Assembly: GCA_019828565.1 (NCBI GenBank)
Contig: JAHDYR010000005.1
Location: 781,342 to 845,341, forward strand
Reading direction: 5' to 3'
Length of the DNA stretch: 64,000 bases
Source: Carpediemonas membranifera BICM
Taxonomy: Eukaryota; Protista; Fornicata
Positions within the stretch are counted from its first letter, which is position 1. Every line of letters starts with the position of its first letter. Of the stretch, positions 32,694 through 55,694 are shown one piece after another. Under the pieces are notes generated by a model. It ran no database searches. It was given only the letters and a program-made list of their open reading frames with translations, and had not been told where the DNA came from. The translations under genes and the position numbers were made by a program.

Positions 32694-32846
32694 ATGGGAG
32701 CAAACTCATCCTGTTTCGATGGTGAGTACACGAGACCTCCTTCCAGTGGCGGAACTGACGGGAAAGCCCGCGTGAGCCCCGGAGCTGGCAACGAACCTGA
32801 CGTTTCTATCGATGGCTTCCGTACGAGGTGCGCTGGCGGGTTCTAA
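32694..32846 (+). CDS. 50-aa putative N-myristoylated micropeptide (GGF-tail family, copy 1)
   Basis: MGANSSC start with AAA-ATG context; C-terminal motif shared with 55551..55694. Confidence 0.6.
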   Translation: MGANSSCFDGEYTRPPSSGGTDGKARVSPGAGNEPDVSIDGFRTRCAGGF

Positions 32847-33137
32847 GGAATCTAACGTAATGGCAATGGTTGAACGATAAATCTACCATCGTCTATCAAC
32901 AATTATCGTGTTCGTGAAGTTTCAATGGCATCATCGTGCCATGTCGGAGAGGTGATCTTCCAAAGGACTCCATAGGACTCCAGATCAAGGGGGAATCACC
33001 CGCAATACGGACACCCAGTGGTGTTTCGCCATTAAATCGGCACAGCGCTCCAACACCGCCATCGGCTGCCCGCAGGTCCAACCCGCCGCACCAGCGACCT
33101 GCGAACCCCCAACCAACACACGAACTACTCATTTACT

Positions 33138-33728
33138 CTACGCCCTGCTGTTCTCGAGCATGCGGCGGAAGCCGTGGCGCCCGATGACAGGGAGGCCGCG
33201 CGCCGCCGCAGCCCAGTCGTCGTCGAACTTGGCGGCGTCGTCGTCGTGCATGCCGATGAGCGTGCGCGTCTCGGTCTGGCCGCCCTTGCCGTCGTCCTCC
33301 CGGATGAGCTCGACAGCGCGGTCGCCGATGGCGCGGCTGTGGACAGACGTCGTCTTGCCGTCGGCGCCGCGGACGGTGCGGGTCGTCTCGGTCACGTCGT
33401 TGACGGTCCTGGTCGTGGACGAGCTGAAGCGGACCACAGGCTCGCGGACAGGTGCGGCGGATGGCTCGCGCTGCTCCTCGGGCGTCGGCTCGGTCCGGCT
33501 CGGCTCGGGGTTGGTCTTGGCCTTCTCCTCCGGCTTCGGCTCAGAGGGCGCGGTCTGTGGAGCGGGCTGCTCCTCGCGGGGCTCCTGCTTTGCGTACTCG
33601 CGTGGGATGCGGACGTAGTAGCCGCCGTCAAGGAAGACGCGGGGCATGGGGGCGAAGAAGTCGTCGAAAACGTTGAACATGGATCTGTGTGAGCGTTTGA
33701 AGCTGTCAGGAACATACCTGCTGAACAT
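33138..33728 (-). CDS. MLF: Myeloid leukemia factor (MLF) family protein; probable in-frame intron 33685-33717
   Basis: FSSSTT...ETTRTVR...SRAIGDRAVELIRE...IGMHDDDAAKFDDDW is the MLF signature. Confidence 0.75.
   Translation of the reverse strand: MFSRYVPDSFKRSHRSMFNVFDDFFAPMPRVFLDGGYYVRIPREYAKQEPREEQPAPQTAPSEPKPEEKAKTNPEPSRTEPTPEEQREPSAAPVREPVVRFSSSTTRTVNDVTETTRTVRGADGKTTSVHSRAIGDRAVELIREDDGKGGQTETRTLIGMHDDDAAKFDDDWAAAARGLPVIGRHGFRRMLENSRA
33685..33717 (-). other. 33-nt in-frame, stop-free intron
   Basis: CAG|GTATGT...CTCAC ACAG|; matches the consensus of the frame-restoring introns in this window. Confidence 0.7.
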
Positions 33729-34153
33729 TGCTGCTTGTGTAGCTTGCTAACCTGTGAAGGTGTTTCTGCTGAAGTGTGGCGTCATAGCATCGATGGAATT
33801 CATCAAATCTCGGATCTGATTGATCTCCGGATGCATCCCAGTCGCGTCAGCTGCGTGGGCAGGGGCTGGAAGCGTGAGAGCTGCATGGCTCCGGTATGGG
33901 TCCAATGAGCGATCAACCCCAGTAACTGTAACTGTAGTGACAGTTCGAAGGCGGCACCGGTCCGGTGCTGGGCCGAGCACAAGCGGCGTGACAAATAATC
34001 AGAGAAAAGAAGACAGCGTGGCTGACTTTACTTAAGGCATTTACAGTTTACCTATTAACGGCATGCAATGATACATAGAATTGCCACGCGTGACAGTGAA
34101 TGAGTGCTGACGATCTTTATAAAAACTGAAGTGACTGATTTTGGTTAGATGTT

Positions 34154-34169
34154 GGTGTCAGATGACACC
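34154..34169 (-). promoter_or_regulatory. Histone-type 3' stem-loop downstream of H4
   Basis: Minus strand CCAAAAAC-GGTGTC-ATCT-GACACC-AACA: 6-bp stem and 4-nt loop, 22 nt after the H4 stop. Confidence 0.7.
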
Positions 34170-34191
34170 GTTTTTGGTTGTTTGATTGCAA

Positions 34192-34497
34192 TTAAGCGAA
34201 GCCATAGAGCATGCGGCCCTGGCGCTTGAGAGCGTAAACGACGTCCATGGAGGTGACGGTCTTGCGGCGGGCGTGCTCAGTGTAAGTGACAGCATCGCGG
34301 ACAACGTTCTCGAGGAAAGACTTGAGAACAGTGCGAGTCTGATCATAGATATCAGCAGAGATACGCTTCACACCACCACGACGAGCGAGACGGCGGATAG
34401 CGGGCTTGGTGATACCCTGGATGTTATCGCGGAAAATACGGTGGCGGCGCTTGGCGCCCTTGCCGAGACCCTTGCCTCCCTTAGCCTTGCCAGACAT
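34192..34497 (-). CDS. H4: Histone H4 (divergent N-tail)
   Basis: [25 protein letters not shown]...[16 protein letters not shown]...YALKRQG. Confidence 0.99.
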
Positions 34498-35182
34498 GAG
34501 AACTAGATTCGATGGTTGAAAATGGGTGATTATTTATGCAATACTTTTCTGCATGACTATGTCAAAATGAAGCTCAGTTTATGGCTTTGAAAATCCGAAA
34601 CAGAAAGTGGGTAGAGGTGGCGAATGGTGGATTGAAATCCTTAGGAATGGCGGATTCACGATGTATATGTAGTTTATGAGTCTTACAGTTTGCTTATTTG
34701 CTTGGTACGCTGTTATTCGGCAACAGAAGCAGCAGTGGATTGGGTTTAGGATTTATTCGTCTCTTCACGCTTGAATATAAGAGAGAAACTTGGTGTTTAC
34801 TACTCATTAGAAGCACACATGTTGAACTGCAACAGCTTCGCGTTTGTTCAGTCCTCTCGCGACGGCGTTGTGGTGGCAAAGTCTGGACAACCAAACGTCC
34901 ACCGCATATAGCTGGCTCTCGCGACTGTCAGCTCAGCCATCCTAATGCACATGGCGTAGTAGCTCCCTCTGAGTTTTTCTAGGCCGGCAACATCAGCCGC
35001 TGATCGTCGCGGCAGTCAGACACACCAGTAAACGGAAAGGAGCGTAGAGCAGGCGCCAGCAACTAAAGCTGAGTCGGCAAAAGCGTCAGGGGTCAGAAAA
35101 TAGATTTGGCTGTGTCAAGATCGCCGTAGATCCGACCACGATCGCGGGCGGTTGAGCGTGAATTTCTTCTGCACCACAACGA

Positions 35183-38100
35183 ATGCAGGCGTTCTTGCAA
35201 TCCCCTCTGCTGAGGATGGATTCTTCTCGTCTTTCACCTCTCCGTTCCACGCTTTTGAGGCATCCGCCGTCCCAAACTCGGCCGATAATGAAATGCATCG
35301 CCGTTGGAGCCCGCTACAGCATCGTTGCAGGAAAGAACACTGTAGTAATCTATAGCAGCGACAACGCTAAGTATGTGAGCAAGCTTGAAGTCGCCAGGGC
35401 CGACCGCATCACCAGCGTCGCCATCGACGACGACTCGACATGCCACTGCGGCACCGCCAAGGGCCGCATCTACACCTTCACCATCCCCACGGGGCGGAAT
35501 ACAGCAATGCCTGCCCCCGAGAGGTTCCGGGAGGGCCACGTCGACGCCGTGCACTTCATCATGTCATTCCGCAACACCACCCGACGCGAGCTGTGGACGG
35601 CCGGGGCCGACAACACCGTGCGGGTTTTCGACGTCGGCGCTGGAACCAAGGCTAAGGCCCGGGTCGTGATCCAGAGGAAGGCCCCCATGACGGCCCTGCT
35701 CCAGGTGCCCTCGGTCCGGGGCAACACCATGATATGGGCGTCATGCCTCGACGGCGCCGTCATTGTGATTGAGCCGAAGTCCCGCAAGGTCAAGCGCGTG
35801 ATCGAGTCGGACGACACCACGATCCCGCTCGACATGGCGTTTGACGGCGTCCACGTCTGGATCGCCACGAGCGAGGGCTCGCTCAAGCTCTACGACCTCA
35901 GCGGCGACCTGATCACTGCCATCCCCCTCCCTGTGCCCGCCAAGTCCAAGGTCGCCCGCGTACTCGCCCGGCCAGTTCTCACTGGGCACCGCGCGCCAGT
36001 GTACGTCGCCATGCAGAGCGGAATCCTCCTCGCAGTGTCATATGACAGTCGGACAGCCTCATACAAGGTATATAAGGCGGCCAAGGCCGTGGGCGGGTTC
36101 GTCGGTACCGAGTCGAACCTCCTCATCGCCTCGGCTCGCGGGCACCTCAGGTCATTCGCACCGATCATGGTCGTCGCGGGCAGGAAGGCGGCCAACGTGG
36201 ACGCGACACATGGATCGACTGTCGACCAGTCTGCGGCCGTCATTGACTCGGCCACGGCCGGCACGATCTTCCAGGAGGTCTCTCCTTCAGCCTTCGACCT
36301 CGGGGACGAAGATGAGGAGCTCACAGCCTCTGACAACATCCCCACGGCGACCCCGAGGCCGAGACACGTCAGGTCGAACAGCATGCTCGCGCCCAGGCCG
36401 CCCAGGACCCCCCTATGCCGTCGGGCGAGCATGCCCGTCATCACGCCCGTCGGCAACGGCCAATCATTTGATGAGAGCGGTGCGTCAGTGCACGCGCTGA
36501 GGGCCGAGCTCAAGGACATCAACGACCGCGCCGCGGCCATGGAGAGGAAGGCCAAACTCGCCCTGTTGCGTGCGTCTGCGAGTAAGAAGTTGAAGACAGA
36601 GCTCCAAGGGACGCTGGCGGCCATAGAAAAGGACAAGAGGGCCCTAGAGGACCAGAAGACGGCACTCGAGGCCCGGCTGCAGCAGGCCGAGTCAGCCCAG
36701 TTCTGCGCCGAGGAGGAGCGCGCCTCGATGAAGGCCAAGGTAGTCTCGGCTACCGAGGAGAACGCACTGCTCGAGGCCCGGGTCACGAATGCCGCCGAGG
36801 ACAAGGCGAACTTGGTCGAGCGGCTGGCCCAGGCTGAGAAGGAGCGCGAGGAAACCCAGACAGACCTCACAGCGACACAGCAGGAGCTCAAGATGCTCCA
36901 CGCCGAGCACACCGCCGCTATGGACCGGCACGCGACCGTTGACGCCAAGGTGAAGCAGCTCAGCCGAGCCAAGGCCTCTGTAGAGACCGAGCTGGAGGAG
37001 TCGAGACAGGAGCTCGAGTTCCTCGAGGCCCGCGTCAGGAGCAGCGCCAAGGCCAAGAGCACCCTCGAGCGGAGGCTCAAGAGCACGCAGGAGGACCTCG
37101 TAGAGGCCGAGAAGCGCGCTGTGATGGCCCGTGACGACCGGCTCAAGATGGAGGTGGCCAGCAGCGCCCTCAGGAAGGAACTCGAGCAGTTTAACGATCG
37201 ACTCACCACAGTCACGGCCCAGGCAGCCAAGGCTGAGCGCCGCGTCCACCTCCTTGCCGAGGACAAGGCCGTGTTGGAGGCTCGGCTTCGTCAGGCAAAC
37301 GGCGAGAAGGCCGAGCTCGAGACTGCTGTGGCGGACCTCAAGTCGCAGCTTGCCTGGGGTCGTGTTCGTGCATCTGAGCTCGAGAGCACCATTGAAGCAA
37401 TCGCCAGCGAAAAGCGCGTGCTGGAGGTGGCGAACGAGGCACTCAAGGGCACGGTTGGCGGCCTTGAGGAGCGCATCGCCGCCATTGGAGTAGAGTACGA
37501 AGCGATGAAGGCCGACCTCGAGCGCCGCATCGCATACCTTGCCAAGGAGAAGGCGCGGCTCGAGAGCAAGGCCGAGGCTCTCTCAGCAGGGGGTGTGAAT
37601 GAGAGGGAGAACCTCGCAGCAAGACTCGGCGACCTTGCTTCCCAGAAAGAGGCGCTCGAGGCCAGGCTTGAGGAGGCCGCGACCGGCAGTGCCGATCAAC
37701 TGAGCGCGGTGCAGGCCGAGCTGGACATACTCCGTCGGGAGAACGCCTCGCTCGAGCTGGAGCTAGAGAACGCACACCTTGACGGGGAACTGCAGAAGAA
37801 TGCCCTCGAGACCAAGCTCTCCGTCCTGACGCGGCAACGGGACGACCTCGAGACCCGCCTGGAGGAGTCACAAGCCGAGCTGCTCCTGTCCCGCCGTGAC
37901 AACACCGCGACACGGGCATCGTTTGAGCAGACCGTGGCCTCGCTGACGAACGAGAGGGACGCCCTCGAGTACCAGCGGGCACAGTCAGAGACGAACCGCC
38001 AGCAAACCCAGACCGAGCTGGAGGACATCCTCGAGACGATCCGTGTCGAGAGAGAGGTGCTACAGAGCCAGATGGGCCGGCGCGCCATCAACGACGGACA

Positions 38101-38527
38101 TGACCCAATGGAGGTCCCCAACGCCAACAAGGAGCGCCCTGCCTCCCCCAATGTGAAACATGTCGCCGCCCAACGTGTCGTTGAGGATGTCCGTGCCGCC
38201 GTGGCCGAGGTCCCCGTAGAGACCAGGTCATACCGCCTGGTCACCTTCGCCATCCACTACCACACGTACTGGGGTCAATCGCTCATGCTCGCCGGGTCGT
38301 CCCCCGAGCTTGGGGCCTGGAAGCTCGACCGTGCCCTCCCCCTCCGCTACATGGGCGACGGCCACTGGGGCGCCACGCTTCCCCTGGCGGCTGGCACGGA
38401 GGTGCAGTATAAGTACGTGGCTGTCAGCCCGTCGTTTGTTCGCTGGGAGAATGATCCTGCCGGGCCGAACCACGTCGTCTCCGTCGTGGAGGACGTCGAG
38501 TGCCAGGACCAGTGGAGTAACCTCTGA
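35183..38527 (+). CDS. WD40 propeller, long coiled coil and C-terminal CBM20 (starch/glycogen-binding) protein
   Basis: GHVDAV...LWTAGADNTVRVFD WD repeats; heptad-rich middle; VTFAIHYHTYWGQSLMLAGSSPELGAW...WGATL...QYKYV...RWE is CBM20. Confidence 0.85.
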   Translation: MQAFLQSPLLRMDSSRLSPLRSTLLRHPPSQTRPIMKCIAVGARYSIVAGKNTVVIYSSDNAKYVSKLEVARADRITSVAIDDDSTCHCGTAKGRIYTFTIPTGRNTAMPAPERFREGHVDAVHFIMSFRNTTRRELWTAGADNTVRVFDVGAGTKAKARVVIQRKAPMTALLQVPSVRGNTMIWASCLDGAVIVIEPKSRKVKRVIESDDTTIPLDMAFDGVHVWIATSEGSLKLYDLSGDLITAIPLPVPAKSKVARVLARPVLTGHRAPVYVAMQSGILLAVSYDSRTASYKVYKAAKAVGGFVGTESNLLIASARGHLRSFAPIMVVAGRKAANVDATHGSTVDQSAAVIDSATAGTIFQEVSPSAFDLGDEDEELTASDNIPTATPRPRHVRSNSMLAPRPPRTPLCRRASMPVITPVGNGQSFDESGASVHALRAELKDINDRAAAMERKAKLALLRASASKKLKTELQGTLAAIEKDKRALEDQKTALEARLQQAESAQFCAEEERASMKAKVVSATEENALLEARVTNAAEDKANLVERLAQAEKEREETQTDLTATQQELKMLHAEHTAAMDRHATVDAKVKQLSRAKASVETELEESRQELEFLEARVRSSAKAKSTLERRLKSTQEDLVEAEKRAVMARDDRLKMEVASSALRKELEQFNDRLTTVTAQAAKAERRVHLLAEDKAVLEARLRQANGEKAELETAVADLKSQLAWGRVRASELESTIEAIASEKRVLEVANEALKGTVGGLEERIAAIGVEYEAMKADLERRIAYLAKEKARLESKAEALSAGGVNERENLAARLGDLASQKEALEARLEEAATGSADQLSAVQAELDILRRENASLELELENAHLDGELQKNALETKLSVLTRQRDDLETRLEESQAELLLSRRDNTATRASFEQTVASLTNERDALEYQRAQSETNRQQTQTELEDILETIRVEREVLQSQMGRRAINDGHDPMEVPNANKERPASPNVKHVAAQRVVEDVRAAVAEVPVETRSYRLVTFAIHYHTYWGQSLMLAGSSPELGAWKLDRALPLRYMGDGHWGATLPLAAGTEVQYKYVAVSPSFVRWENDPAGPNHVVSVVEDVECQDQWSNL

Positions 38528-38585
38528 GCAGAATTGATCGGTCACTATAAATAGCGCATAAAATGCGATTTATGGGATTACTTTG

Positions 38586-40145
38586 TTACATACCAGCCTT
38601 TGCCTTCGCCATCCGGATCTGGCTCTGAAGCAGCGCCCGCTCCTGCTGGAACGTCCCCTGCAACTCATGCAGGGCCGCGGCGTGCTTCAGGATGGCGTCG
38701 CGATGGGTGCCCTCGATGGCCTTGATGCGGGCCTCATACGCCTCCCGCATCGCCGCGAGCTCCCGGGCAAGTACCGCGTCGAAGGAGTCGCCGTCGTCGA
38801 ACACGGGCTCATCTCGCCGCACCGTCTGCGCCTGCTCGAGACGCTCGCTGAGGTCGTCGAGCTGCTGCCGCAGGTCCTCCACCGCAGCCTGCCCGTCCAC
38901 ATGCGCCTGCTCGAGCGCCGTGATCCGCCGTGAACGCCGCTCGAGCTCGTCGTTCTTCCACTTCTGGGCAGCGGTCAACCGATCCACCTCGGCGCGGAGT
39001 CCACTTTCGTTCGCGGTAGTCGAGGCCGCTGTCTTCGTCACTTGGCTCAGCTCGGCCTCTAGGCGGCGGCGCTCGGTGCCCTGCTCTACAGCCTCCGCCC
39101 GAGCCGCCTTCAGTGCTGTCTCAAGGGCCGCGATCTCCTCCCGCAGGTCCTGGGCAGTCCGAGTGGAGTCGGAGTGCAGTTTTAAGCTCTCCTTCAGCCG
39201 ATGCTGTGTGATGTGGAGCTCCTGTCTCAGCTGGCTGATCGCCGACTCCCTTTCGCTGGCTTGCTCAGCCCCCGTGGACTCGAGCGCCCTCGCCTTGGCC
39301 TCCGACTGGGCGATCCGGGCTGTCAGCTCCTGCACCCGCTCCCTCTGCTCCCTCTCGGCCCTCTCAGCGGACAGGACTGCGTTGGACGAGCGTCTGGCGT
39401 CACTCTGGGCGTCTGCGAGCTCTTTCTTGAGGGCCTCGTTGGAGTCCTGGGCCGAGACGAGCTCTCGCCGGACCCGCTCAAGAGCTCGCTGCTCGTTCTT
39501 GAGCTTCTCGACTGCCCCACTGGCCTCCTTGTCCTTGATCTCGGCCTGGACCCCCACGGCGGCCACGGTGGGCGCGGGGGCGGGCGTCGTTTGCACCATG
39601 GCGAAGACCTTGGCCACGGGCACAGTCTGGATGCTCTTGGGCTCCGGGGTTACCGCCCTGGGGGCCGGGGTGAGCTGCATCGGGGCCGTCTGGGTGAACG
39701 TCGAGTGTGGGATGGGCTTCGGGGCGGGAGGGAGCGTGGGCATCCGGACGGGCGGTGCAGAGCCTACTCGTGCGGGTCTCCCCTGAGATACACCATGTTT
39801 TGAACATAGACCATGCTCCGTGCGGATGGGCGTGTTGGGCCCAGAACCGCCACCCCGGGCTGCTTTGATCAGCTCGTTTTCATACAACGCTCGGTATCTG
39901 CTGGTCTCGGCCTTTAGCTGAGATATTTCACTCCTCAGCTGCCTCTCAAGCTGTCTTTCCTCCTTGCTGGTCATATAAAGGCCCGACGGCTCCTCACCAT
40001 GCTTCGCAACATTCAGCATCGTGTTCAACTTCTCATAGCGCTGCACAAACCCAGTTTGATCTGTAGCCACGCGTCTATGAGTGCCAGTTGGCGCTGTTCC
40101 TGGCCTTGAAAAGCTCGCAAGTGATCTTCGAGCTGATAACGCCAT
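38586..40145 (-). CDS. Coiled-coil protein with a Pro-rich linker carrying xQT motifs
   Basis: Long E/A/R/L heptad region; first ATG (MALSARRS) at 40145. Confidence 0.75.
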   Translation of the reverse strand: MALSARRSLASFSRPGTAPTGTHRRVATDQTGFVQRYEKLNTMLNVAKHGEEPSGLYMTSKEERQLERQLRSEISQLKAETSRYRALYENELIKAARGGGSGPNTPIRTEHGLCSKHGVSQGRPARVGSAPPVRMPTLPPAPKPIPHSTFTQTAPMQLTPAPRAVTPEPKSIQTVPVAKVFAMVQTTPAPAPTVAAVGVQAEIKDKEASGAVEKLKNEQRALERVRRELVSAQDSNEALKKELADAQSDARRSSNAVLSAERAEREQRERVQELTARIAQSEAKARALESTGAEQASERESAISQLRQELHITQHRLKESLKLHSDSTRTAQDLREEIAALETALKAARAEAVEQGTERRRLEAELSQVTKTAASTTANESGLRAEVDRLTAAQKWKNDELERRSRRITALEQAHVDGQAAVEDLRQQLDDLSERLEQAQTVRRDEPVFDDGDSFDAVLARELAAMREAYEARIKAIEGTHRDAILKHAAALHELQGTFQQERALLQSQIRMAKAKAGM

Positions 40146-40419
40146 CGCCGTTCGTTCTGCCGACCCGCCCGACTCCCCTATGGTGGCATGACCCAGGTCA
40201 GAGGCTGTGTCGTCCCATAGTGTGCATGAGGTCACGCCTCATGCGTTCGCGGTCTTCGAATATCGACAGTCATCGCTGGGAGGACGAATAAAGCGGGTCG
40301 AGGGGGAGAGGTTTAACAACTGGACAAATGTGAGGTCGGCTTCTTCATAGCTTACTGCATATAGCTCAGCTAGCGTCTACTCTCAGTGGCGGTAGCTCTG
40401 TCGAGGCCATTGCCGGGCC

Positions 40420-40962
40420 TCACAGTCCGCCATCCTGGGCGTGACCGCGGTGATGCCGTGTGAACAGCCGTATCTGCCTCAGATGGCTGTCCTTGCCGCC
40501 CTGGTGGTTTTCTGTGATCAGCATCTGCAGGTAACGCATCCGCACACCGCTCGCGCCGTCCAACTCGGTGTGGCCCTTGAGGTCGATCACATACCAGCCG
40601 TGGGGCTCAGAGACAACCAGCTGGGTGAGATCCGCGAGGAGATATGGGCCCAGTGCGGAGCGTATAGTCATGACCTCGGGCGTGTAATTCGTGTCTTGAG
40701 AGTAGTCGAAGAAAATGCAGATGTGGGAGAGAACGACGGAGGAGGGGAAGGAAATGGTTACCATATGCGGTTGTTCGGCGTCAGATTGCCAGTAGGAGTT
40801 CAGATCGTTGTCTATGAGGTTGTATGCGTTGTGAGGGGGTTTGGAGGATGATGTCAGCCAAACACACTCCTTGCTGATATCTACATACCCCGATTGCTTG
40901 ATCCGGTCAGTAAAACGCTTGAAATCTCCTGGGGAAAACTCTATTGGCTCGAATGACGACAT
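40420..40962 (-). CDS. APC10: Anaphase-promoting complex subunit 10 (DOC domain)
   Basis: WLTSSSKP...NLIDNDLNSYWQSDAEQPH...DTNYTP...EPHGW...ENHQGGKDSHLRQI. Confidence 0.92.
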   Translation of the reverse strand: MSSFEPIEFSPGDFKRFTDRIKQSGYVDISKECVWLTSSSKPPHNAYNLIDNDLNSYWQSDAEQPHMVTISFPSSVVLSHICIFFDYSQDTNYTPEVMTIRSALGPYLLADLTQLVVSEPHGWYVIDLKGHTELDGASGVRMRYLQMLITENHQGGKDSHLRQIRLFTRHHRGHAQDGGL

Positions 40963-41126
40963 CCTACTTGGGTCCCGGAGTCGGCAAAGAAAAAAGGACG
41001 TCGAGAGGGCATGCTGGGTACATTTGGGTAGTCTCATGGGCGTGGTTACCCCGCATAGCGTCTGTTTCTTGATCACGCATTTTATGTCAAAAATCGCAAC
41101 ACACTCGAGAACGCGCGAAACGGCCC

Positions 41127-43088
41127 ATGCAACTAGATAACCCGTTCCTGAAGACAGTACGGGTGAATTTTGGCCTCATCACAGTCGGTCAAACGTACGG
41201 ACGCCGGCTTAACCTTCTCAAGCTGTTCAACCTTCCCGTTCTAGACGACGACGTTCCGACAGGCATTGAATACACAACAACAGTCATTGATGACAGTTCT
41301 GACTACGAGGTTCATCCCCCGAGCGGCATATTCTTCCAGTCCGCCGAGCCGATCACCGTTGGCGAAGTTACCATCGACAACACAATCCTGCTCACCGTCT
41401 CCCCCGTGTCCCACCGCACATCGTCTTTCTCCTTCACCATCGAGTGCGCGCATCCCTCTGTACCACCCGTGCGCGTCTTGGCGTCCGGGCTGGCGCATCC
41501 TACCGTTATCAAGGAGGATCGCAACGACATGGTCCAAATGGCCATCGAGGACAACATAGACAACGAGATTCTCGACCTCAAGGACCTGTATGACGACATC
41601 ATGCTCCAAATGGAGCGGGGGCAGGACCCCACGCTCGATGACCTTGTCCCCTTCATCCCCATGAACGCCAAGGACCCGTACGGCGCCCTCACAGCGCTCA
41701 GGAGGAAGCTCATGAACATGCCGAAGCACGAGGGGCGGCACCGCATGTTGGGGCTCACAGCCAGCTCGGCCGGGTGGTCACTGCCCAGGCGGATGTCGGG
41801 GGGCTCCCTGCCGCCGGCGGAGGCGGGGCCAGAGGCGTTGGAGTTCACACACACGGCACATACGGTGGAGGGCATGATTTTCCTCTCGAACGCCGCCCAG
41901 AACGCCGAGAACCCCGGCGACCTCAGGTACGACGGCATCTCGGGCCTCGGCTGGGCGCCATTCCATGTGACAGCTACGCTGGACGAGATAGACGCCGCTG
42001 AGGAGCAGTACAAGCAAGACATGGCGACGTACGAGGCTGAGATGCACCAGTGGGAGCAGATCCAGGCTGAGGAGGCCGCCGCTCCCAAGAAGGGAAAGGG
42101 GAAGGCCAGCAAGGCGCCCACACCCGCCCCGCAGCCCGTGAAACCCGAGCGGCCAGAGATCATTGACCTGAGAGCTAGTGTGATCGCCGCGAACGCCCGC
42201 AGCCTCGCGGCGAGAGACAGCAACCTCCTCGGGCAAGTGCTCGCGGCAGACTCCAAGCGGGCCCGGGGCGTAACGCAGCGGGCGCCCCTGGACCCAATTA
42301 ACCGGGGCAGGTCGTGTCTGTTCGAGTCGAGGGCTAAGCTGTTCACTAAGCTGCGCGACGAGAATGCCAGCGACCAGAAGGACGTCATCGTGGCGGGTAA
42401 GGTCGGTGTGGGACGGCCAACGGACGAGCCGCCCAGCCCTGACCGGGCCTTCTTCGTCCAGCAGCTGGTCGACCAGTACACGCGCGCCTTTGCCCGCAGC
42501 CGGACAACCATCCTCACCCCGGCCCTGCCCCCCGTCGGCACCGGTGTCATCGAGACGCCGCTGGGGTTCGACGGGCTCTCGGTGTACCGGCCTAGATTCA
42601 AGGAGACGCCCAGAGAGGAGTTCGCCGTCCGCCGCATGGCCGTCGAGCGGTTCCAGCGGGCTGCGTGTAAGATCATCGTGCAGCAGCGGGCTGAGCGGCG
42701 GCTTCGGATGCTTCAGGTGGCTCTCAAGAGGGCTAAGCTGCTGAAGAAGAAGCTGAGTACGAATCTGAAGACGATGACCGTGGAACCCCTCCCGCCGGCC
42801 GTCGACCCCGCCGCCTTCCTGACCGACACGACCATCGTCGTGCCCAAGGAGACCGCCGTCAACGCCGTCCAGGCCATGCTTCGGTGCGACCGACCGTTCG
42901 CCACCCCGACTACGGTCCCGCAGCTGGGGCTCCGGCCTGTGTACGACTCAGCCAGCAGGGAGGCCCGGGGTGTCACGGCCGTCTTCATCCCTGACCCCGT
43001 TGTCGGGCTCGAGCACGACACTCCGGTCGGGTTCGCTGATTGGCTGGTCGAGGGCTTTGCTACTCTCGACACCCTTCCTGCGCTCTGA
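41127..43088 (+). CDS. CFAP221/PCDP1-like flagellar protein (Ig-like N-terminus, IQ-like C-terminal helix)
   Basis: VNFGLITVGQTY..RL ASH-like start; YRPRF...VRRMAVERFQRAACKIIVQQRAERRL recalls CFAP221 (recognised from memory, not searched). Confidence 0.5.
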   Translation: MQLDNPFLKTVRVNFGLITVGQTYGRRLNLLKLFNLPVLDDDVPTGIEYTTTVIDDSSDYEVHPPSGIFFQSAEPITVGEVTIDNTILLTVSPVSHRTSSFSFTIECAHPSVPPVRVLASGLAHPTVIKEDRNDMVQMAIEDNIDNEILDLKDLYDDIMLQMERGQDPTLDDLVPFIPMNAKDPYGALTALRRKLMNMPKHEGRHRMLGLTASSAGWSLPRRMSGGSLPPAEAGPEALEFTHTAHTVEGMIFLSNAAQNAENPGDLRYDGISGLGWAPFHVTATLDEIDAAEEQYKQDMATYEAEMHQWEQIQAEEAAAPKKGKGKASKAPTPAPQPVKPERPEIIDLRASVIAANARSLAARDSNLLGQVLAADSKRARGVTQRAPLDPINRGRSCLFESRAKLFTKLRDENASDQKDVIVAGKVGVGRPTDEPPSPDRAFFVQQLVDQYTRAFARSRTTILTPALPPVGTGVIETPLGFDGLSVYRPRFKETPREEFAVRRMAVERFQRAACKIIVQQRAERRLRMLQVALKRAKLLKKKLSTNLKTMTVEPLPPAVDPAAFLTDTTIVVPKETAVNAVQAMLRCDRPFATPTTVPQLGLRPVYDSASREARGVTAVFIPDPVVGLEHDTPVGFADWLVEGFATLDTLPAL

Positions 43089-43306
43089 TTTTGACTGAAA
43101 TATGATTGATCTTTACGAATTTAATGGGTTAGGGCAAGTAATAAACCACTACCACAGTCAGCCTCCACCAGGGGCGTTAGCAAGTCAACGGAGGCTGCGG
43201 CGTCTGGGGGCCAAGGGGCGCCATGGTCTCGAGCTCGATGATTCGACCACTTTTACGTATTTAATCTGAGTTACTGTTATAAACGAAAGCGCGACGTATC
43301 ACTCCA

Positions 43307-46460: not shown

Positions 46461-46570
46461 TGTGTTCTCTGAACTTCGAGCTTCTTGCGCCGAAAAACCT
46501 CATCAAGTCAAAAATGGCCAAAACTGAAAACCTGGGCGATTTGATTTATGTGCATTATTCCGCTGGTATA

Positions 46571-48859
46571 TTAGATGAGGGGGTGGGCATACATGTCGTC
46601 GATGATCCGTTCAAACTGGAGCATGAACTGGCCTCGGACAGTCTTCATCGTCGGCGTCAGGAGCTTGTTCTCGGGAGTCCACTCATACGGGGTGATGTGG
46701 ACGCTCTTGGGGAACTCGAAAGGACGCAGCTTGCCCGCACCGAGCTTCTTAAACTTCTCGAGGAGAGCGCGCCTGAAGGCGGGTTCCTGGACGGCGGCGG
46801 GAGTGGCGTGCTTCGGCAGCAGGCCCTCGATCTTGCACTGGTCGATGTCGACAGTGCAGATTACGACAACGGACGCCTCTGTTCCCTTGGCGAGTGTGAC
46901 GAGGCTGGGGCAGGCGGGGCACTCGAGCACGCTGTCGATCTGGGACAGGTTGACGAACTCACCTTGGCTCAGCTTCATGACATTCTTGAGGCGTCCGACA
47001 AGCTTGAAGCACTCGTGGCCGTCGACTGTGACGATCTCAGCGACGTCGCCAGTGTGGAACCAGCCATCCTCGTCAATGGCGGCGCGGGTGGTCTCCTCGT
47101 CCTTGTAGTAACCCTTGAAGATGGTCGAGCCCTTGAGACACAGCTCGCCCTTGGGGTTGCCCTCGCCAGGCTTGGGGCAGGCGTCGTACTGCCCGGGGAC
47201 CGACACAATCTTGTTGATGAGGCCGGGCGTGTGCACAGCAAGGTGGCCCATACGGAGCTCGAACTTGCTCGAGTCGCCGCCTGTGCATGCTAGGTAAGCT
47301 GTGGTAATAAAAGAACAAACCAGTCTCGGTCATGCCGTATCCCTCGTAGATCTCCTCGAGGCAGAGCGCCTCCTTCAGGAACACAAGGACCTCACCGTCG
47401 ATGGGGGCCGACCCGCACCAGATCTGCCGGATGCTACCACCCAGAGCGGCCCGGAACTTCGAATAGACTAGCCGCATGCCGAGGGGAGACGGCTTGATGT
47501 ACTTGCGAGTGCGGTTCATGGTAATCATCTGCTCGTGACGGAGCCTGAGATAGTGTTTCAGCAGGGAGTGCTTCAGACCCGTCGTGGCGTCGATCTTGGC
47601 CCTCATCGAGTTGTACACCCGAGTAAGGACACGCGGGACAGCAATCATGACCGTCGGCTTGAGTGCTGCGAGGTCACCCATGAGCATCTTGACGTTTCCC
47701 GAATAGTAGCCGATGGCGTCGCCGCGCCAGATGAAGCAATGCTCCACGGCCCGCTGGAACACGTGCGCGAGGGGCAGGAACGACAGCACGATGTCGAACT
47801 GGGGCCCTGTCTTGGACGCGGGGTGCTTGGGCGACCCCTCAAGCATGGCGCTAGCCTGCAAGATGGCGCCAACGAGGGCGGAGCAGTGGAAGATGACACC
47901 CTTGGGCGTACCGGTGGTACCCGACGAGAACAAGATGGAGAACGTATCCTCGGGCTTGAGGGGGTAGTCGGGCTTGCTCTCGGCGGCGTTTCCCCTGGTG
48001 AGGGCGACGTTCCACTCGATGGCAACGGGGCCCTCGGCAGGATAGGGGGTTGTGGCATCGATGATGGACGTAAACTTGTGCATGTCGGGCGGGATGGGGA
48101 CGCTGCCGACCTCGACGGCAGTAAGGATGGAGGGCAACGAGGGGGCCGACGAGAAGATCTGCGAGGCAACGTCGTCCCAGTTGTAGACGGGACTGTCGTC
48201 TTTCGTGCGGAGGTCGATGTTGAGCCGCTCGCAGTATAGGGCGGCCGTGTTCGCCAGCAGGTTGTGGTGGTCGACCGGGTCGAACGAGACGACCAGCTCG
48301 AGCGAGGGGATGACGTCCTTGAGCGAGAGCATGAGGGCAGTGTGGCGCTTGTCGACGAAGGCGGCCTTCGCCTCCGTCAGCGCGCCGATGTGCATGAGGT
48401 TGTCGATGCCCAGGGCGTCGTAGAGGGGCACGGAGACGAGGCCGGCGGCCATGCAGGCAAGGTCGGCCTGGAGCCACTCCTCCCGGTTGCGTCCGTAGAT
48501 GATGACGTTGTCGCCGGGCTTGAGGTTGGTCGTGCGGAGGAAGTCGCGGAGCTGGTCGACCTTGACCGCGACCTCGCGGTACGTGCGCCAGTTGTAGTCG
48601 CGGTAGGAGTCGACGTCAACCTTCTGACGCGTGCCCTGGAAGGGGCGGTCGCCGAACTCGGCTACAGCGTCTCTGAATCCCTTGATCGGGGTGTACTCCT
48701 GTGTAAGCACTAGCGATCATGGTGCCACCATACGTCGAAGTTATAGCTCTTGGTCCGTTCAATGAGGTTAAATTCGCACTTCTCGCCGCTGAGACCAAGG
48801 GGATGAGCCTTGATGTGATATTCAGTTGGTTTAGAGCTGTTCTCGTTGTTTTCTGGCAT
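46571..48859 (-). CDS. Long-chain acyl-CoA synthetase; exons 48859-48734, 48698-47321, 47289-46571
   Basis: FSSGTTGTPKG, SFLPLAHVF, YGMTET, GWFHTGD, LLTPTMK; two introns reconstruct MPENNENSS...NFD|EYTP and YGMTET|ACTGG. Confidence 0.9.
47290..47320 (-). other. 31-nt intron
   Basis: GTTTGT...CTTAC CTAG; removal joins the two ACS ORFs in frame. Confidence 0.85.
48699..48733 (-). other. 35-nt intron
   Basis: GTATGG...CTTAC ACAG; links an upstream 42-codon ATG exon to the ACS ORF. Confidence 0.8.
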
Positions 48860-49156
48860 TATGTACCTTTCTAAGCGTTCCTACAGCGAGGCTAAATTCT
48901 GCCTGCACTCGAAGCAGCTCTGAGATCGAGTGAGATTGAGAAAAAATCCAAACAGAAACGACTCCATCGGCCCTTACATCGGATTGCTGACCGCCAGTCA
49001 CGTTTTCAGCGCTCCCCGACGCGTATACGCATTGTTTCGCGACCCGGTTGTCATGGCAATACTCTCGGTAGAATCCGCAGATCCGCACACAATCTATTTT
49101 CGTACATTGCTAAACTGCCAATAAAAAGTATCTACATTTACTCGTCACACGTGCGT

Positions 49157-50578
49157 CTACATCTTGAGGAGCGCCACCATCTTGTCGAAGTCGGCGTCCG
49201 TGTTCATCTCGGTCACCGCGATCGTGAGCAGGTCGTCGAAGTCACCGCGGGGGCACACCACGGAGCCAGGGACACCGGCCAGGATTCCCATGCTGACAGC
49301 CTCCTCGACGAGGGCCTTGGCGCTCTTGCCGGCGGGGAGGCGGATGGTGAACTCGTTGAAGAACGACTCATTGAGGACCTTGACCGCGGGGCACTCGGCG
49401 TCGATGCGCTCGACCAGGGTGCAGGCCTTGTCGTGGTTGAGCATGGCGAGGTCCTTGAAGCCGGTCTCGCCGAGGAGGGCCATGTGGATGCTGAAGCCAA
49501 GCGACATGATGCCCGCAGACGTGCAGATGTTCGACGTCGCCTTCTCACGGCGGATGTGCTGCTCCCTGGTGGCGAGCGTGATAACGTAGGTCCGGTTGCC
49601 ATCAGCGTCGACGGTCTCGCCGATAAAGCGGCCGGGCATCTGCCGGATGAACTTGTCGCGGCAGGCCATGAAGCCGACGGTGGGGCCGCCGTACGCCATG
49701 GGGCCGGCGAGGGACTGCCCGTCTCCGATAACGATGTCAGCGCCCATGGCGCCCGGGGGCTGCATGACGCCGAGGGAGACGCACTCGGGGACGGAGACGA
49801 CGAGGAGTGTGCCGTTCTCGTGGCACTTCTCGGCAAGGTAGGAGAGGTCGCGGACGTTGCCCCAGGCGTCGGGGTTCTGGACGACGACAGACGAGGTGAT
49901 CCCGTCGAGCTCGGCGATGACGGCCTCGACCCAGTCCTCCTCAGGGCCCACGGCCGGGACAACGTCGACAGCCATGCGGCCGTCGTTGTTGGCGTACGTC
50001 TCGAGGACGGAGATGGAGTTTGCGTGCACGGTGGGGGCGACGACGACCTTCTGCTTGCGGGTGATACGGCGAGCCATCAGAGCGGCCTCGGCGAGGGCGG
50101 TGTGGACGTCGTACATGGAGGCGTTGGCGGTGTCCATGCCGGTGATCATGGCGACCATGGTCTGGAACTCAAAGATCGACTGGAGGGTGCCCTGGGACAC
50201 CTCGGGCTGGTAGGGGGTGTACGCGGTGAGGAACTCGGAGCGCTGGATGAGGTGGTCGACGACGGAGGGGATGAAGTGGTGGTAGATGCCGTTGCCGAGG
50301 AAGAAAGAGGCCTGCTCGGCGGAGATGTTCTTGTTGGACATGTCGGTGAACCAGCGGGTAACATCGAGCTCGCTCATGCTCTCCGGGAGCTCAAGCTTCT
50401 CCTTGAGGCGCAGTTCATCAGGGATAACAGACAGGAGCGTCTCGATGCTGTCCTTCTCGATCGTGGAAAGTGCCTGTTGGCGAGTGGCCTCCGAGTGGGA
50501 GAGATATGGGAGGGCATCGTAGCTGTGGTTCATTAAACGGCCGAAAGAAACAGCCAGAGGCTTCAGAGAGCTCAGCAT
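49157..50578 (-). CDS. gcvPA: Glycine cleavage system P protein subunit 1 (GcvPA type) with short organelle-targeting leader
   Basis: RSEFLTAYTPYQPEVSQGTLQ, ANASMYD, TREQHIRREKATSNICT; ends after ~470 aa; leader MLSSLKPLAVSFGR. Confidence 0.93.
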   Translation of the reverse strand: MLSSLKPLAVSFGRLMNHSYDALPYLSHSEATRQQALSTIEKDSIETLLSVIPDELRLKEKLELPESMSELDVTRWFTDMSNKNISAEQASFFLGNGIYHHFIPSVVDHLIQRSEFLTAYTPYQPEVSQGTLQSIFEFQTMVAMITGMDTANASMYDVHTALAEAALMARRITRKQKVVVAPTVHANSISVLETYANNDGRMAVDVVPAVGPEEDWVEAVIAELDGITSSVVVQNPDAWGNVRDLSYLAEKCHENGTLLVVSVPECVSLGVMQPPGAMGADIVIGDGQSLAGPMAYGGPTVGFMACRDKFIRQMPGRFIGETVDADGNRTYVITLATREQHIRREKATSNICTSAGIMSLGFSIHMALLGETGFKDLAMLNHDKACTLVERIDAECPAVKVLNESFFNEFTIRLPAGKSAKALVEEAVSMGILAGVPGSVVCPRGDFDDLLTIAVTEMNTDADFDKMVALLKM

Positions 50579-50921
50579 TGCGTGATTGTCAAACGTCTCC
50601 AAAGTTCCAGCCGTGCCATCTGATACATAGCTCCATTTATCGAATACATAGAGCATATCCCACCCCGCCCCGGGCTCGGACTTGGTGAATCAAGCCGGGC
50701 GGATCTTGACTCAGGGAAGCTCTGGGATCAAGAGATACGACTGGCCAGTCAGCTATAGGTGCAGCGCATGAGCCCTATTTCCACCAGGCTCTGCCGGCTG
50801 AAGCACCGCTATATTTAGAGCAAGGATGCATGACTCCATCATTAGCACCAGACTGCCCCGGCATGCACCCAGTCATGGACCCCAATCAACTGATTAACAT
50901 GATTTACTCATCTCATGCGCC

Positions 50922-53765
50922 CTACCCCACGACTCCCGCGATCAGAGACCGCAAATCACTCACCCTCTGACCAGGCTCACACGACTCGACGAAGGCTCTC
51001 CTGCTGTCGCACAGCGATGGCCCGATAGCATCCTGAAGCGGGGGCTGGCTGTTCTCCTCGACAACATCACTCAACGTCGCCTGTATCGCATCCCAGAAGG
51101 GCGTCACGTGTGGTGTGAACGTCGGGTTCGCCCGGGCCAGCTGTAGTAGCCTGAGGATGCCCAGGGCGAGTGCCATCCGCTTCGACCTCGACATGGACGT
51201 GTCGAACGCCTCAAGGGACAGTGCGACGATGATCGCCACGGGAGTCGCACTCGGCGCTGGCTGGCCCGCCTTGGTGCCGATGAGGGCCTCGAGGGCGTCT
51301 AGGCGATCGGGCGGGATATTCGTAATCTGCAGAATCTCAAGGACCATCGCGGGGCAGTAGAAGATGACGCGACACACCAGGGTGATACAGGAGGACACCA
51401 CGAGCGGGCGCGACGACATGATCGCGGAATCCACCATCAATTTCAAGATACGACTTAGAATCTTCTGATTCTCGACCTCCGTGCCCTCTGGCATCGCGTG
51501 TATGTGCGATTGGTCGTGTGGCAGCAGGATCCGCGCGAGGCTATCCAGTACACTGATCGCCGCGAGCGCGATCCTGGGTTGACCGTCGTTGACCACCTGA
51601 CCGACGGTGGCCAGGAGCCGGTCGAAGATGACTGGGTCAGTTAGCATCTCGGGGGCCAGGAAGGCGACATGGTCGAGACACACTAGGCATGCCTGGATCA
51701 GTGGTGGGTCGTCGAGGGCGGCGTCGATCGCGTTGAATACCAGGCTGACGAGGGAGGGCATGTCCTGCAGCGGCTGGCGGGTGTTGAGGAATATGGCGTT
51801 GAGCAGGCCGATCGCGCTGTCTGCGAGGTTGACGAAAGCGTCGGATCCCGAGTCGCCCGAGAACGAGACGAGCGGGAGCACTGATGCGATGACCGCGGCG
51901 GGTTCGGACACGGGCGCCATGACCTTGATGACAACTCGACACAAGTCGATGATGTGTGTCTGTAAGTGCGGCGTCGCTTGGGCGGACGTCCACAGGTTGG
52001 GCAGAGCGGCCATGACAGGGCCGAGGTAGCTGCCGACGGAGGCCCCGATCTCCTGAGTGAGCAGGATCACCGCCTTGAGGACGTACGTCGCGACGTCGTC
52101 GGGGCAAGTCTCGATCGTGGCGACGCAATACTGGAGGGTGGTCTCGAGTACGGTGCCCTCGACCTGCTGCAGCCATGCAGTATCCCCGGACATCAGAAGC
52201 ACCAGGGAGTGGAGGGCAGTCACCGAGACGACCTGCACACGGCCGGGCTGGTCCTCGGACGGTGGCTTGAGCATGGAGGCGAGCAGTGTGGCACACTGGG
52301 CCAGCATCTCGGGCTGCAGGGTGAATGCGATCGACCCTATGAGCGAGGCGAGCCGTCTGGTGAGTAGGGCCGACCGGCCCATGGCGACCTCGTGGACCCG
52401 CGTCAGCAAAGAGCTGAAGTCGACCTCGCCTTCTAGGAAGTACACACACGACCCTATCGCCCGCAGCGCCGTGTCGGTGAGCCGCACATCCATGTCCGGC
52501 GCCCCGAGAGTGCCCAGGACAGTCATGGCACGCTTCAGCACGAGGTCATGGAACTTGTCAGACTCGCATAGTCCCATGACAAGCAGGTCCGCGCAACGGC
52601 GCAAGAAGTCGTCGTTGGCGCCGTCCTCAAGGGCGATGTCGTCCGGGTCGGCGTCCCATAGTTCCTCCTCCCGATCGTGCAGGATAAGGAAGCGGTTGAA
52701 GCACTGGGCGATCAGCTCCTCGGCCACGGCCTGGGAGAAGTGGGCCTCCATCAGCGGGGCTGCCTTGATGAGCGTGTCGCCCGGCTTGGTCGTGTACTCT
52801 CCCGTCTCGAGCAGCGTGTACAGCACTTTCAGCGCCCAGCCACACGCGACACGCTCCTTGGTCTCCTGGACGGTGTAGTCGACCCCTGCGTAAAACTGCA
52901 GCGTGTGCAGGCTCAGCGCGATGAAGCGGGGAATCACGGTGACGGCGGGGGCGGAGAAGCGCCGCAGGAGAGTGCACACGAGCTTGTTGGCCCAGCGCAG
53001 CACGCTCCACGCGGCGTCCACGGTGTCTTTCTCGCCGACTGGTGCGATCGCGGTGACGGAGGACATCACGAGGGCGACAACGGGGAGCAGGGCGTCCGCC
53101 ATGGCCGAGGGGACGGGGTCCGTCATCGCCTGGGTCGTGCGGATGAGCTCCTCGAGCACGGCGAGTGTCTCCGGGGTCTGCTGCTGCTGTAGGACGGCCT
53201 GGTACCGATTCCCAATAATCGCGAGCACCTCGGGGGCGATGGCGTTGAAGCTGCCGCGCCTGGTCGCTATCCTACGCTGCGTCAGCCGCTTGATGACTGT
53301 CCTAAGTGTCTTTGCGGCGAGCATGGGGTTGGGGCAGGCCGTGATAAAGCCACGATACTCCTCCCAATGCGCGGGGAAGTCGCGGTGCGCGGCGTTGGCG
53401 ATCGCCTCGGGTATTCCCGCCCGGTAGACGAGGGACTCCTCAATCTGGTTGGGTATGGTGAGTAGCGCGGTCCGTATGACGTCGATCTCAGCCTGTGTGA
53501 TGGTGCTTGTCCGCGATCTGCTCTTCCACTGCGAGCGGACAAAGTTCTGCGTAATGGGCGCGTATGGTGGTTGTATACGTACTTTAAAGCACAGACCGGC
53601 AATCAAGCGGGTCTCTGGGACTCTGGATGTGTCAGCGAAGATCTCGAGTAGCGCAGAGGCGAAGCCGCTCTGTTCCTCGAGTTCTACTAGCTTTGAAAAC
53701 GCTTGTTCGTGTTTCCATTGGTTATTTGTCTCGACTAGGAGCATAGCAATAGACTCTGCGTCCAT
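50922..53765 (-). CDS. IPO11: Importin-11/Kap120 (importin-beta family); probable in-frame intron 53547-53582
   Basis: Spliced RLIAGLCFK|NFVRSQW; AHRDFPAHW; VIKRLTQRRI; FLILHDREEELWDADPD. Confidence 0.75.
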   Translation of the reverse strand: MDAESIAMLLVETNNQWKHEQAFSKLVELEEQSGFASALLEIFADTSRVPETRLIAGLCFKVRIQPPYAPITQNFVRSQWKSRSRTSTITQAEIDVIRTALLTIPNQIEESLVYRAGIPEAIANAAHRDFPAHWEEYRGFITACPNPMLAAKTLRTVIKRLTQRRIATRRGSFNAIAPEVLAIIGNRYQAVLQQQQTPETLAVLEELIRTTQAMTDPVPSAMADALLPVVALVMSSVTAIAPVGEKDTVDAAWSVLRWANKLVCTLLRRFSAPAVTVIPRFIALSLHTLQFYAGVDYTVQETKERVACGWALKVLYTLLETGEYTTKPGDTLIKAAPLMEAHFSQAVAEELIAQCFNRFLILHDREEELWDADPDDIALEDGANDDFLRRCADLLVMGLCESDKFHDLVLKRAMTVLGTLGAPDMDVRLTDTALRAIGSCVYFLEGEVDFSSLLTRVHEVAMGRSALLTRRLASLIGSIAFTLQPEMLAQCATLLASMLKPPSEDQPGRVQVVSVTALHSLVLLMSGDTAWLQQVEGTVLETTLQYCVATIETCPDDVATYVLKAVILLTQEIGASVGSYLGPVMAALPNLWTSAQATPHLQTHIIDLCRVVIKVMAPVSEPAAVIASVLPLVSFSGDSGSDAFVNLADSAIGLLNAIFLNTRQPLQDMPSLVSLVFNAIDAALDDPPLIQACLVCLDHVAFLAPEMLTDPVIFDRLLATVGQVVNDGQPRIALAAISVLDSLARILLPHDQSHIHAMPEGTEVENQKILSRILKLMVDSAIMSSRPLVVSSCITLVCRVIFYCPAMVLEILQITNIPPDRLDALEALIGTKAGQPAPSATPVAIIVALSLEAFDTSMSRSKRMALALGILRLLQLARANPTFTPHVTPFWDAIQATLSDVVEENSQPPLQDAIGPSLCDSRRAFVESCEPGQRVSDLRSLIAGVVG
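53547..53582 (-). other. 36-nt in-frame, stop-free intron
   Basis: AAA|GTACGT...ATTAC GCAG|AAC; removal restores the conserved importin-beta N-terminal KN..W motif. Confidence 0.8.
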
Positions 53766-53936
53766 ACACGCTGTGTCGCCGTTCGTTGGATGACTCCAAC
53801 ACAGTCGCGTCAGCCAGGACGGCAGCGGTGAGGTTACACCGTCCAGTGACGACCTTTCCTACGTGTGCGCACGGTGGTGGGTTCAAGAGAGGTGGCTGTG
53901 GCTCTGCCATGGCCACCGCACTTTAAGACACAAACA

Positions 53937-54924
53937 ATGAGCGTTTCCCTGGAATTGGAGAAGCACAGGCGGTTCATCGTGGGTTTCTCAGGCGTATGTA
54001 TGCCCAATACCCCTCACTCAGTCGTCAGATTCCCTGCAGCACTCTCTCTCGGACTATCTGAGGATCAACGGCATCTACTGGTCCCTGTGCGGGCTGAGCC
54101 TCATGGATCCTGAGTATATACGCTCCGACTTTAACGAAGAGGAGATCATTAGCTTCACACTGGCATGTCGTAATGGCACCGGCGGGTTTGGAGGCTTCCC
54201 CGGCTTCGACGCCAGCCTCGTCTACACACTCTCTGCCATCCAAGTCCTCGCGCTGTATGATGCCCTGGACCGTATAGAAGACGTAGAAAAGACTGTATCC
54301 TGGATAGCTTCTCTGCAGCACGAGAACGGGTCCTTCCAGGGCGACCACCACTTCCCCGACGTCGACACGCGCTTTGTGTACTGCGCTGTCGCCTCACTGT
54401 CGATTCTAGACCGGTTAGACGCGATTGACTGCTCCAAGACGATCTCGTACATAGTCTCTTGCCAGAACTGGGACGGCGGCTTCGGCCTCAAGCCCGGCCG
54501 CGAGTCCCACGCCGCGCAGGCCTTCTGCTGTGTCGGGGCAGTCTCCATTCTCAAGTCGGTCGACTCCATCGATAAGGATAGCTTGGTCTTCTGGCTCTCG
54601 ACACGACAAGACACCAACACCGGCGGGCTCAACGGCCGGCCCGATAAGGACCCAGACGTCTGCTACTCCTGGTGGGTCGTCAGCACCCTCGCTATTCTGG
54701 ACAGCCTCAGCTTCATCGACGTCCCCCGGTTGGTGACTTTTGTCAGGAGGGCACAGGACGTCGTCGACGGCGGCATCGCCGACAGGCCCGAGCACATGGC
54801 CGACATCTACCACACGTTCTTCGGGCTTGCGGGGATCGCCCTGCTTGACGAGACGGGCGGGCTGAAGGCCATCGACCCAACATATGCGCTGCCCGTCGAC
54901 GTCGTGGCCCGGATCTTGGGATGA
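53937..54924 (+). CDS. RABGGTB: Rab geranylgeranyltransferase (type II) beta subunit; intron 53994-54021
   Basis: LEKHRRFI...|SSDSLQHSLSDYLRINGIYW; ESHAAQAFCCVG; GLNGRPDKDPDVCYSWW; DIYHTFFG. Confidence 0.93.
53994..54021 (+). other. 28-nt intron
   Basis: GTATGT...CTCAC TCAG; removal restores the frame and the homology. Confidence 0.88.
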
Positions 54925-54958
54925 GGGTGTTCGTTACAATATGTAAAGAGCAAGTCGG

Positions 54959-55327
54959 TCAAGGGATTCAGAGACGCTGTAGCCGAGTTCGGCGACCGCC
55001 CCTTCCAGGGCACGCGTCAGAAGGTTGACGTCGACTCCTACCGCGACTACAACTGGCGCACGTACCGCGAGGTCGCGGTCAAGGTCGACCAGCTCCGCGA
55101 CTTCCTCCGCACGACCAACCTCAAGCCCGGCGACAACGTCATCATCTACGGACGCAACCGGGAGGAGTGGCTCCAGGCCGACCTTGCCTGCATGGCCGCC
55201 GGCCTCGTCTCCATGCCCCTCTACGACGCCCTGGGCATCGACAACCTCATGCACATCGGCGCGCTGACGGAGGCGAAGGCCGCCTTCGTCGACAAGCGCC
55301 ACACTGCCCTCATGCTCTCGCTCAAGG
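54959..55327 (+). pseudogene. 369-bp inverted duplicate of an internal acyl-CoA synthetase fragment (source 48317-48685)
   Basis: Reverse complement of 48317-48685 with one substitution seen (55213, G>A); lacks the gene's start and 3' end. Confidence 0.92.
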
Positions 55328-55550
55328 TCGGCAGCGTCCCGATGCTTCTTTCCTTCCTGCCATAGTCACCCAAGCAAAAGGGAATGCTGCCCATGGTTTC
55401 TCGTGGCGGTCAAAATATTTGGTACCCCAATCTCAGGCTCGTGTGCAGAGTTGGAAGCGCTTGTTGAGCCCTACCAAGCGAATTTTTGTGTTGCGGTATT
55501 TAGCGAAATTTAGCGCCGCCACAAACAAGACAGAACAAGAAATCAGCAGA

Positions 55551-55694
55551 ATGGGACAGAAATTAACCAACATATCGGTTGACTGTGGCAGAGGCGATGG
55601 AGACAACATTCACCGCCATTGCGGCGTGGATCCTGAGGCAAATCCTGAAGTGACCACGGATAGAACTCGTGTCCGCACCATTGGCGGGTTCTAA
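55551..55694 (+). CDS. 47-aa putative N-myristoylated micropeptide (GGF-tail family, copy 2)
   Basis: MGQKLT start after an A-rich leader; C-terminal PEVTTDRTRVRTIGGF* aligns with 32694..32846. Confidence 0.6.
   Translation: MGQKLTNISVDCGRGDGDNIHRHCGVDPEANPEVTTDRTRVRTIGGF

Follow-up and report, generated by a model that had tools for sequence, protein, structure and literature searches.

The window analysed here, a stretch of 64,000 nucleotides from Carpediemonas membranifera BICM (contig JAHDYR010000005.1), carries on its forward strand two tiny open reading frames (ORFs), A (32694..32846) and B (55551..55694), which translate exactly as an earlier note on this DNA had reported, into microproteins of 50 and 47 residues. 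A starts with MGA and ends in RCAGGF before its stop codon; B starts with MGQ and ends in RTIGGF. The two belong to a multigene family that is real, unannotated and larger than the original pair. B is a transcribed gene of this family and A would be another: reads were compared at locus B, and the gene status of A derives from its sequence pattern.

Similarity searches miss this family because the middles of its members do not align. Protein and hidden Markov model searches that used A, B or the alignment of the two against the organism's own genome (69 contigs, 24,237,836 bases) returned nothing except A and B. The start and stop ends are more informative: the pattern ATG-GGN...GGN-GGN-TTY-stop recovers seven further intergenic stop-free ORFs of 43-48 residues, all starting with MGN, and the relaxed pattern MGN...G-x-F-stop gives 19 matches, 17 of them in frame (p = 6e-7), as against none for a reversed-pattern control. 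Counting A and B, the family that the earlier note had surmised comprises at least 19 loci, 17 of them distinct (a tandem pair on C8 is duplicated), which encode peptides of 37-51 residues and lie both scattered and in tandem. About seven additional candidates in frame have G-x-(M/L/I/V) as their tail, or a final F that lacks the glycine, and the tandem neighbours of GGF loci end in GGM or GGFPSF or have no tail. The complete sequence was read for twelve members; for the others the analysis covered the coordinates and the first 26 codons, all of them open. Most out-of-frame matches to the pattern come from high-copy repeats (e.g., L043, L044, and L048).

Two cases illustrate how such genes may come and go, or be hidden. 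Three tandem members at L049:1501-2679 (G000 C6:1490146 onwards) have a common upstream element, ATCTTCGCAG, and tails that pass from GGF through GGFPSF to none, which is a snapshot of family birth and decay; the ORF at L049:2000-2131 has extra residues past GGF and is again terminated by F. Two near-identical MGN...F ORFs, at C26:404706-404829 and C26:419545-419667, are one homopolymer T apart and one of them is out of frame, possibly by a nanopore assembly error that conceals a member.

Are these ORFs under selection as proteins? Synonymous swaps between A and B had been taken as a sign of it, but over the last 16 codons pS, the proportion of synonymous differences, is 0.46 and its nonsynonymous counterpart pN is 0.40, with identical GGF-stop codons, so that the swaps by themselves say little. 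The conclusion stands on other grounds, for the retention of the reading frame in 17 of the 19 matches, together with tail codons (GGN GGN TTY TAR) that differ across the family in third positions exclusively, is stronger evidence of selection at the protein level. The wobble-only variation, along with zero Rfam matches in the window, also rules out a shared 13-nt DNA motif or non-coding RNA. The resemblance between A and B is itself real: their C-terminal alignment is free of gaps over the final 16 residues, as the earlier note had drawn it (BLASTP pair E = 3e-4), and from position -16 to -4, hence excluding GGF, the match beats shuffles (p = 1.6e-4) and is the top of 45 family pairs. Since this match exceeds chance without GGF, A and B are probably closer kin to each other than to the remaining family.

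The ORFs also share a gene layout. TAAA occurs within 56 nt past the stop in all 12 fully read members (shuffled mean 3.3) and YCAY lies at -43..-22 from the ATG in 10 of the 12 (shuffled mean likewise 3.3). For A, which is flanked by two converging genes and lies between their predicted 3' ends, the predicted transcription start is the initiator-like YCAY element CCAT (32659..32662, forward strand), whose A is 33 nt upstream of the ATG; the likely polyadenylation signal is TAAA at 32878..32881 on the same strand, a motif that most ordinary genes in this window have as well.

For B, this layout is observed in RNA. The gene produces a stand-alone polyadenylated transcript of 237 nt (55521..55757, forward strand), spanned by contigs of the runs X2 and X3, both of which have poly(A) directly behind 55757. 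The 22 letters preceding 55521 are absent from the genome and contain the cDNA adapter published in PMC3212895, so that 55521 is the 5' end of the transcript; a spliced leader on B is rejected on the same evidence. The RNA consists of an A-rich leader of 30 nt, the ORF, whose start at 55551 is the first ATG, a 3' untranslated region of 63 nt and poly(A). Its 5' end is the A of an initiator-like CCAC (55519..55522), and a TAAA (55745..55748) begins 12 nt ahead of the mapped poly(A) site, both on the forward strand. In run X1 the contig depth of B is 5572, whereas the genes on either side reach 90 and 173; in both small runs, B is the sole gene of the stretch to have been assembled. As contig depth is a poor measure of abundance, and X1, X2, and X3 all come from one sample, we consider the mRNA of B to be apparently abundant.

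The B contig of X1 is circular, running to 55681 and, after one extra G, back to 55521; its 162 nt are a multiple of 3 and leave the ORF frame without a stop. Most likely the circle arose artificially, in assembly or by ligation, with the extra G derived from the cap, because the contigs of X2 and X3 are linear and polyadenylated; a circular RNA is the less probable alternative. Upstream of B, at 54956-55340, lies a young, 99% identical, inverted partial copy of an acyl-CoA synthetase gene (48311-48688). Beyond the 378-nt arm of this copy, 15 bases match 48097-48111, about 200 nt further along the source, in a template-jump-like manner. That B might belong to this fragment, as an exon downstream of it or as its trans-spliced half, was considered and rejected, as the fragment is an inverted copy and B is transcribed with a 5' end and poly(A) of its own.

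Only about three residues are conserved at each end of the peptides, the fixed features being Met-Gly, residue 3, the length, Gly at -2 from the end and a hydrophobic last residue. Gly2, which all members have, was required by the search pattern. At residue 3, which the search left free, 17 of the 19 loci have Asn, B has Gln and A has Ala; none of 106 background MG starts has Asn3. At the other end, the x of the G-x-F tail is Gly in nine of 19 loci, A and B included, and another residue in ten, while the terminal residue is hydrophobic (F or M/L/I/V) wherever the tail is kept. A conserved C-terminal motif thus exists, but it is not the RxRxxGGF deduced from the pair: RxR is confined to A and B, and the shared tail is G-x-hydrophobic-stop. 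Cathepsin B-like frames at C2:301299, C7:78739, C63:801679, and C63:803087 likewise end in G-x-F-stop; this is probably a coincidence with the normal C-terminus of cathepsin B.

Between the ends, the middles are mostly unalignable and rich in G, S, T, P, D, and E, which make up 55% of their residues. The AlphaFold model has neither fold nor secondary structure (pLDDT, its per-residue confidence, 57.6; pTM, its global confidence, 0.12), and the middles are accordingly predicted to be intrinsically disordered. The peptides are neutral to acidic, no signal peptide was found in family members, and at residue -4 those fully read have A, I, T, G or V and in no case Cys. Codon bias is absent, with a GC content at third codon positions (GC3) of about 0.5 versus about 0.8 in neighbouring genes. 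The single alignable tandem pair has nonsynonymous and synonymous divergences of dN 0.61 and dS 1.1 over 43 codons, a divergence that, judged from this comparison, is fast without being evidence of positive selection.

N-myristoylation of the family, already thought probable from the starts of A and B, is well supported by inference, because the genome encodes an N-myristoyltransferase (NMT; PF01233 at C54:1211105-1211563, E = 3e-56), nine of the 12 fully read members match PROSITE PS00008, and Asn3 or Gln3 is reported to permit myristoylation without Ser/Thr6 (PMC4736023), which suits a family where seven of 20 distinct members have Ser/Thr6. The palmitoylated cysteine that the earlier note had added to the myristoyl group did not prove to be a rule. 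Its nearby Cys is residue 7 in A and, less convincingly, residue 12 in B, and among the 12 members A is the sole one with Cys in the first ten residues; dual acylation of the kind known from SH4-type proteins, as predicted from these sequences, is not general in the family. Elsewhere in the window, a 41-residue intergenic ORF (14904-15029, forward strand) has an MGT start and an A-rich leader, lacks the G-x-F tail and is a possible further myristoylated microprotein outside the family count.

In functional terms, this architecture creates a puzzle: Why should so many peptides keep both ends and share nothing else? The explanation that we favour, tentatively and at somewhat less than even probability, is that they form a lineage-specific family of N-myristoylated disordered microproteins, a repertoire of membrane-tethered ligands docking via their G-x-hydrophobic C-terminus in a shared partner. 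Both ends would then be handles for shared machinery. After removal of Met, Gly2 would be myristoylated, following the rules of NMT, and the myristoyl group would attach the peptide weakly and exchangeably to the cytosolic side of a membrane or to a myristoyl-binding carrier. The free carboxylate of G-x-(Phe/Met/Leu) could dock in a pocket of the partner, by analogy with PDZ ligands, C-degrons or the SSB tail; the conservation of a hydrophobic terminal residue suggests that the carboxyl end itself is recognised rather than discarded. Every member would present its own disordered segment of 35-45 residues at the membrane, the family as a whole constituting a set of ligands or adaptors.

Several points weigh against this explanation. 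The docking partner is putative and the peptides are known from nucleic acids alone; evidence of transcription is limited to B and to one study, with the RNA status of the runs guessed. PDZ ligands rarely have Gly at -2 from their end. Moreover, a plain tether leaves unexplained why at least 20 unrelated middles have been retained. Ser/Thr6, finally, is present in seven of the 20 distinct members, the proportion being about 80% among the predicted NMT substrates of kinetoplastids (PMC1885993).

The diversity of the middles is better accounted for by the main rival, which we regard as somewhat unlikely: the peptides would be lipopeptides exported or shed for signalling or defence, with the myristoyl group and G-x-F as marks for export or processing, comparable with the CAAX of fungal a-factor-type pheromones and the N-acylation of Leishmania HASPB, and with the variable middle as the message. 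Many divergent short genes with conservation restricted to terminal motifs, their tandem birth-and-death clusters, the lack of codon bias and the high apparent abundance of B would all fit, as would the inferred sexuality of the species (PMC8516963) and the existence of acylation-dependent export (PMC3491706). Yet the peptides have neither signal peptide nor CAAX, a second site for acylation is missing in most of them, and their neutral to acidic character is unlike that of cationic antimicrobials. The family members have unrelated housekeeping genes as neighbours and none in common, hence no shared transporter, protease or receptor. In its most specific form, which we hold to be a little more doubtful again, this alternative envisages a dedicated family of exporters, proteases or receptors that would read the G-x-hydrophobic C-terminus of 25-40 N-myristoylated peptides, in lipopeptide signalling or recognition (mating, quorum, self/non-self). 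Such a system with its lipid at the N-terminus is, to our knowledge, not known from any eukaryote. A link to PocR histidine kinases was rejected, as the 21 PocR-domain genes lie no nearer to family loci than chance: none within 5 kb, and three loci (two independent) within 25 kb versus one expected. The 21 PocR-domain proteins fall in two size classes, with open frames of about 730-770 and 2,000-2,160 residues.

Conserved ends around a hypervariable core are equally the hallmark of MSDIN, cyanobactin and orbitide precursors, and the peptides could be precursors resembling those of ribosomally synthesized and post-translationally modified peptides (RiPPs), with a protease or ligase that reads G-x-hydrophobic, cuts after Gly and joins it to the Gly-Asn start in a head-to-tail ring, or brings the core to maturity in some other way. 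The conservation of Asn3, which far exceeds that of Ser/Thr6, would agree with such a role; however, NMT already accounts for Asn3 and Gln3, three conserved residues per end without a leader are very few, and no processing enzyme or maturase is found among the neighbours of any member, no genome-wide maturase search having been made. We judge this possibility improbable. For A and B in particular, RxRxxG might mimic the AGC-kinase site RxRxxS/T, making them pseudosubstrates or docking peptides of kinases; the RxR and P[DE]V[ST]xD that they have in common beyond chance are consistent with this role, which, given the lack of RxR in the other members, would be a subfamily speciality at most and appears very improbable. 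The di-glycine tag imagined by the earlier note after ubiquitin and Pup, in which loss of Phe would let an E1 activate the exposed glycine for ligation to lysines and so add a lipid anchor to targets, has to be abandoned almost entirely. It could draw on the nine loci ending in GGF and on nine matches to ThiF/E1-type genes, a count without obvious expansion, but it fails because half of the family could not expose a glycine: where x is another residue, removal of F leaves no C-terminal Gly. Besides, the residue after GG is conserved, whereas the pro-residues of ubiquitin-like proteins vary, and the beta-grasp fold is missing from the predicted structure. Least probable of all is a function that resides in the RNAs themselves, or ORFs that are incidental. 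The missing codon bias, a B RNA that folds slightly better than its shuffles (z = -1.9) and the absence of the peptides from protein databases would allow it; the frame kept between start and stop motifs, the wobble variation, the blank in Rfam and a polyadenylated RNA of normal mRNA layout all contradict it.

In its presumed mode of action the family resembles known small acylated proteins, and in its organisation the hypervariable families of peptide precursors. Searches for homologous proteins, a scan of 1.84 billion representatives, the ESM Atlas, Pfam and exact look-ups gave no homologue outside this genome, and none of 11 members looked up in a collection of 15 billion sequences was present; such searches have little power for sequences of so low information, and their blank does not prove absence. 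Pfam gave no match for the family peptides. The best match in the PDB is a weak one, to VP5N, a myristoylated penetration peptide of aquareovirus (5zvt_A, E = 0.026 over profile positions 1-28). Like the family, VP5N and reovirus mu1N are short (42 residues), start with MGN and are rich in Ser, Thr and Gly; unlike it, VP5N is released from a capsid protein by autocleavage and has no G-x-F, the match being limited to the myristoylation start and composition. We therefore treat this resemblance as convergence.

The hydrophilic acylated surface proteins (HASPs) of Leishmania are also small hydrophilic N-acylated protist proteins without signal peptide, encoded by a variable gene family (PMC3491706). 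They differ in having no conserved G-x-F end, and no sequence match to them was found. HASPs are, moreover, longer, dually acylated and repeat-based. The precursors of fungal lipopeptide pheromones (a-factor and those of basidiomycetes) resemble the family as multiple short, poorly alignable ORFs that keep terminal motifs and are often unannotated; they carry, however, a C-terminal farnesyl on CAAX and are often clustered with receptor genes, whereas the Carpediemonas peptides have an N-terminal lipid site, no Cys at -4 and housekeeping neighbours. RiPP precursor families such as MSDIN, PatE, and orbitides similarly comprise tens of scattered genes with conserved ends and a hypervariable core, but have leaders or followers of 10-40 residues and short cores. 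Ubiquitin-like modifiers and Pup recall the half of the family with GG before the last residue, and Pup is comparably short and disordered. The beta-grasp fold, however, takes some 70 residues or more and GG is not invariant here; the tails end in F/M/L/I/V rather than in the Glu or Gln of Pup, for whose PafA/Dop ligase no search was made. The family can thus be placed neither with HASP or a-factor nor with ubiquitin-like proteins or Pup.

Precedents exist for small acylated proteins and, separately, for hypervariable peptide precursors, but a literature search found no description of a family that combines a start suited to NMT with a short, fixed length and a G-x-F end. The published annotation of C. 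membranifera (8,300 proteins) appears to lack the entire family, even though at least one of its members is seemingly among the abundant mRNAs. Should a dedicated lipopeptide system be borne out, it would be the first peptide signal system in metamonads; and if the peptides are signals, they would offer a first handle on cell-cell communication and on the unseen sexual cycle of these organisms.

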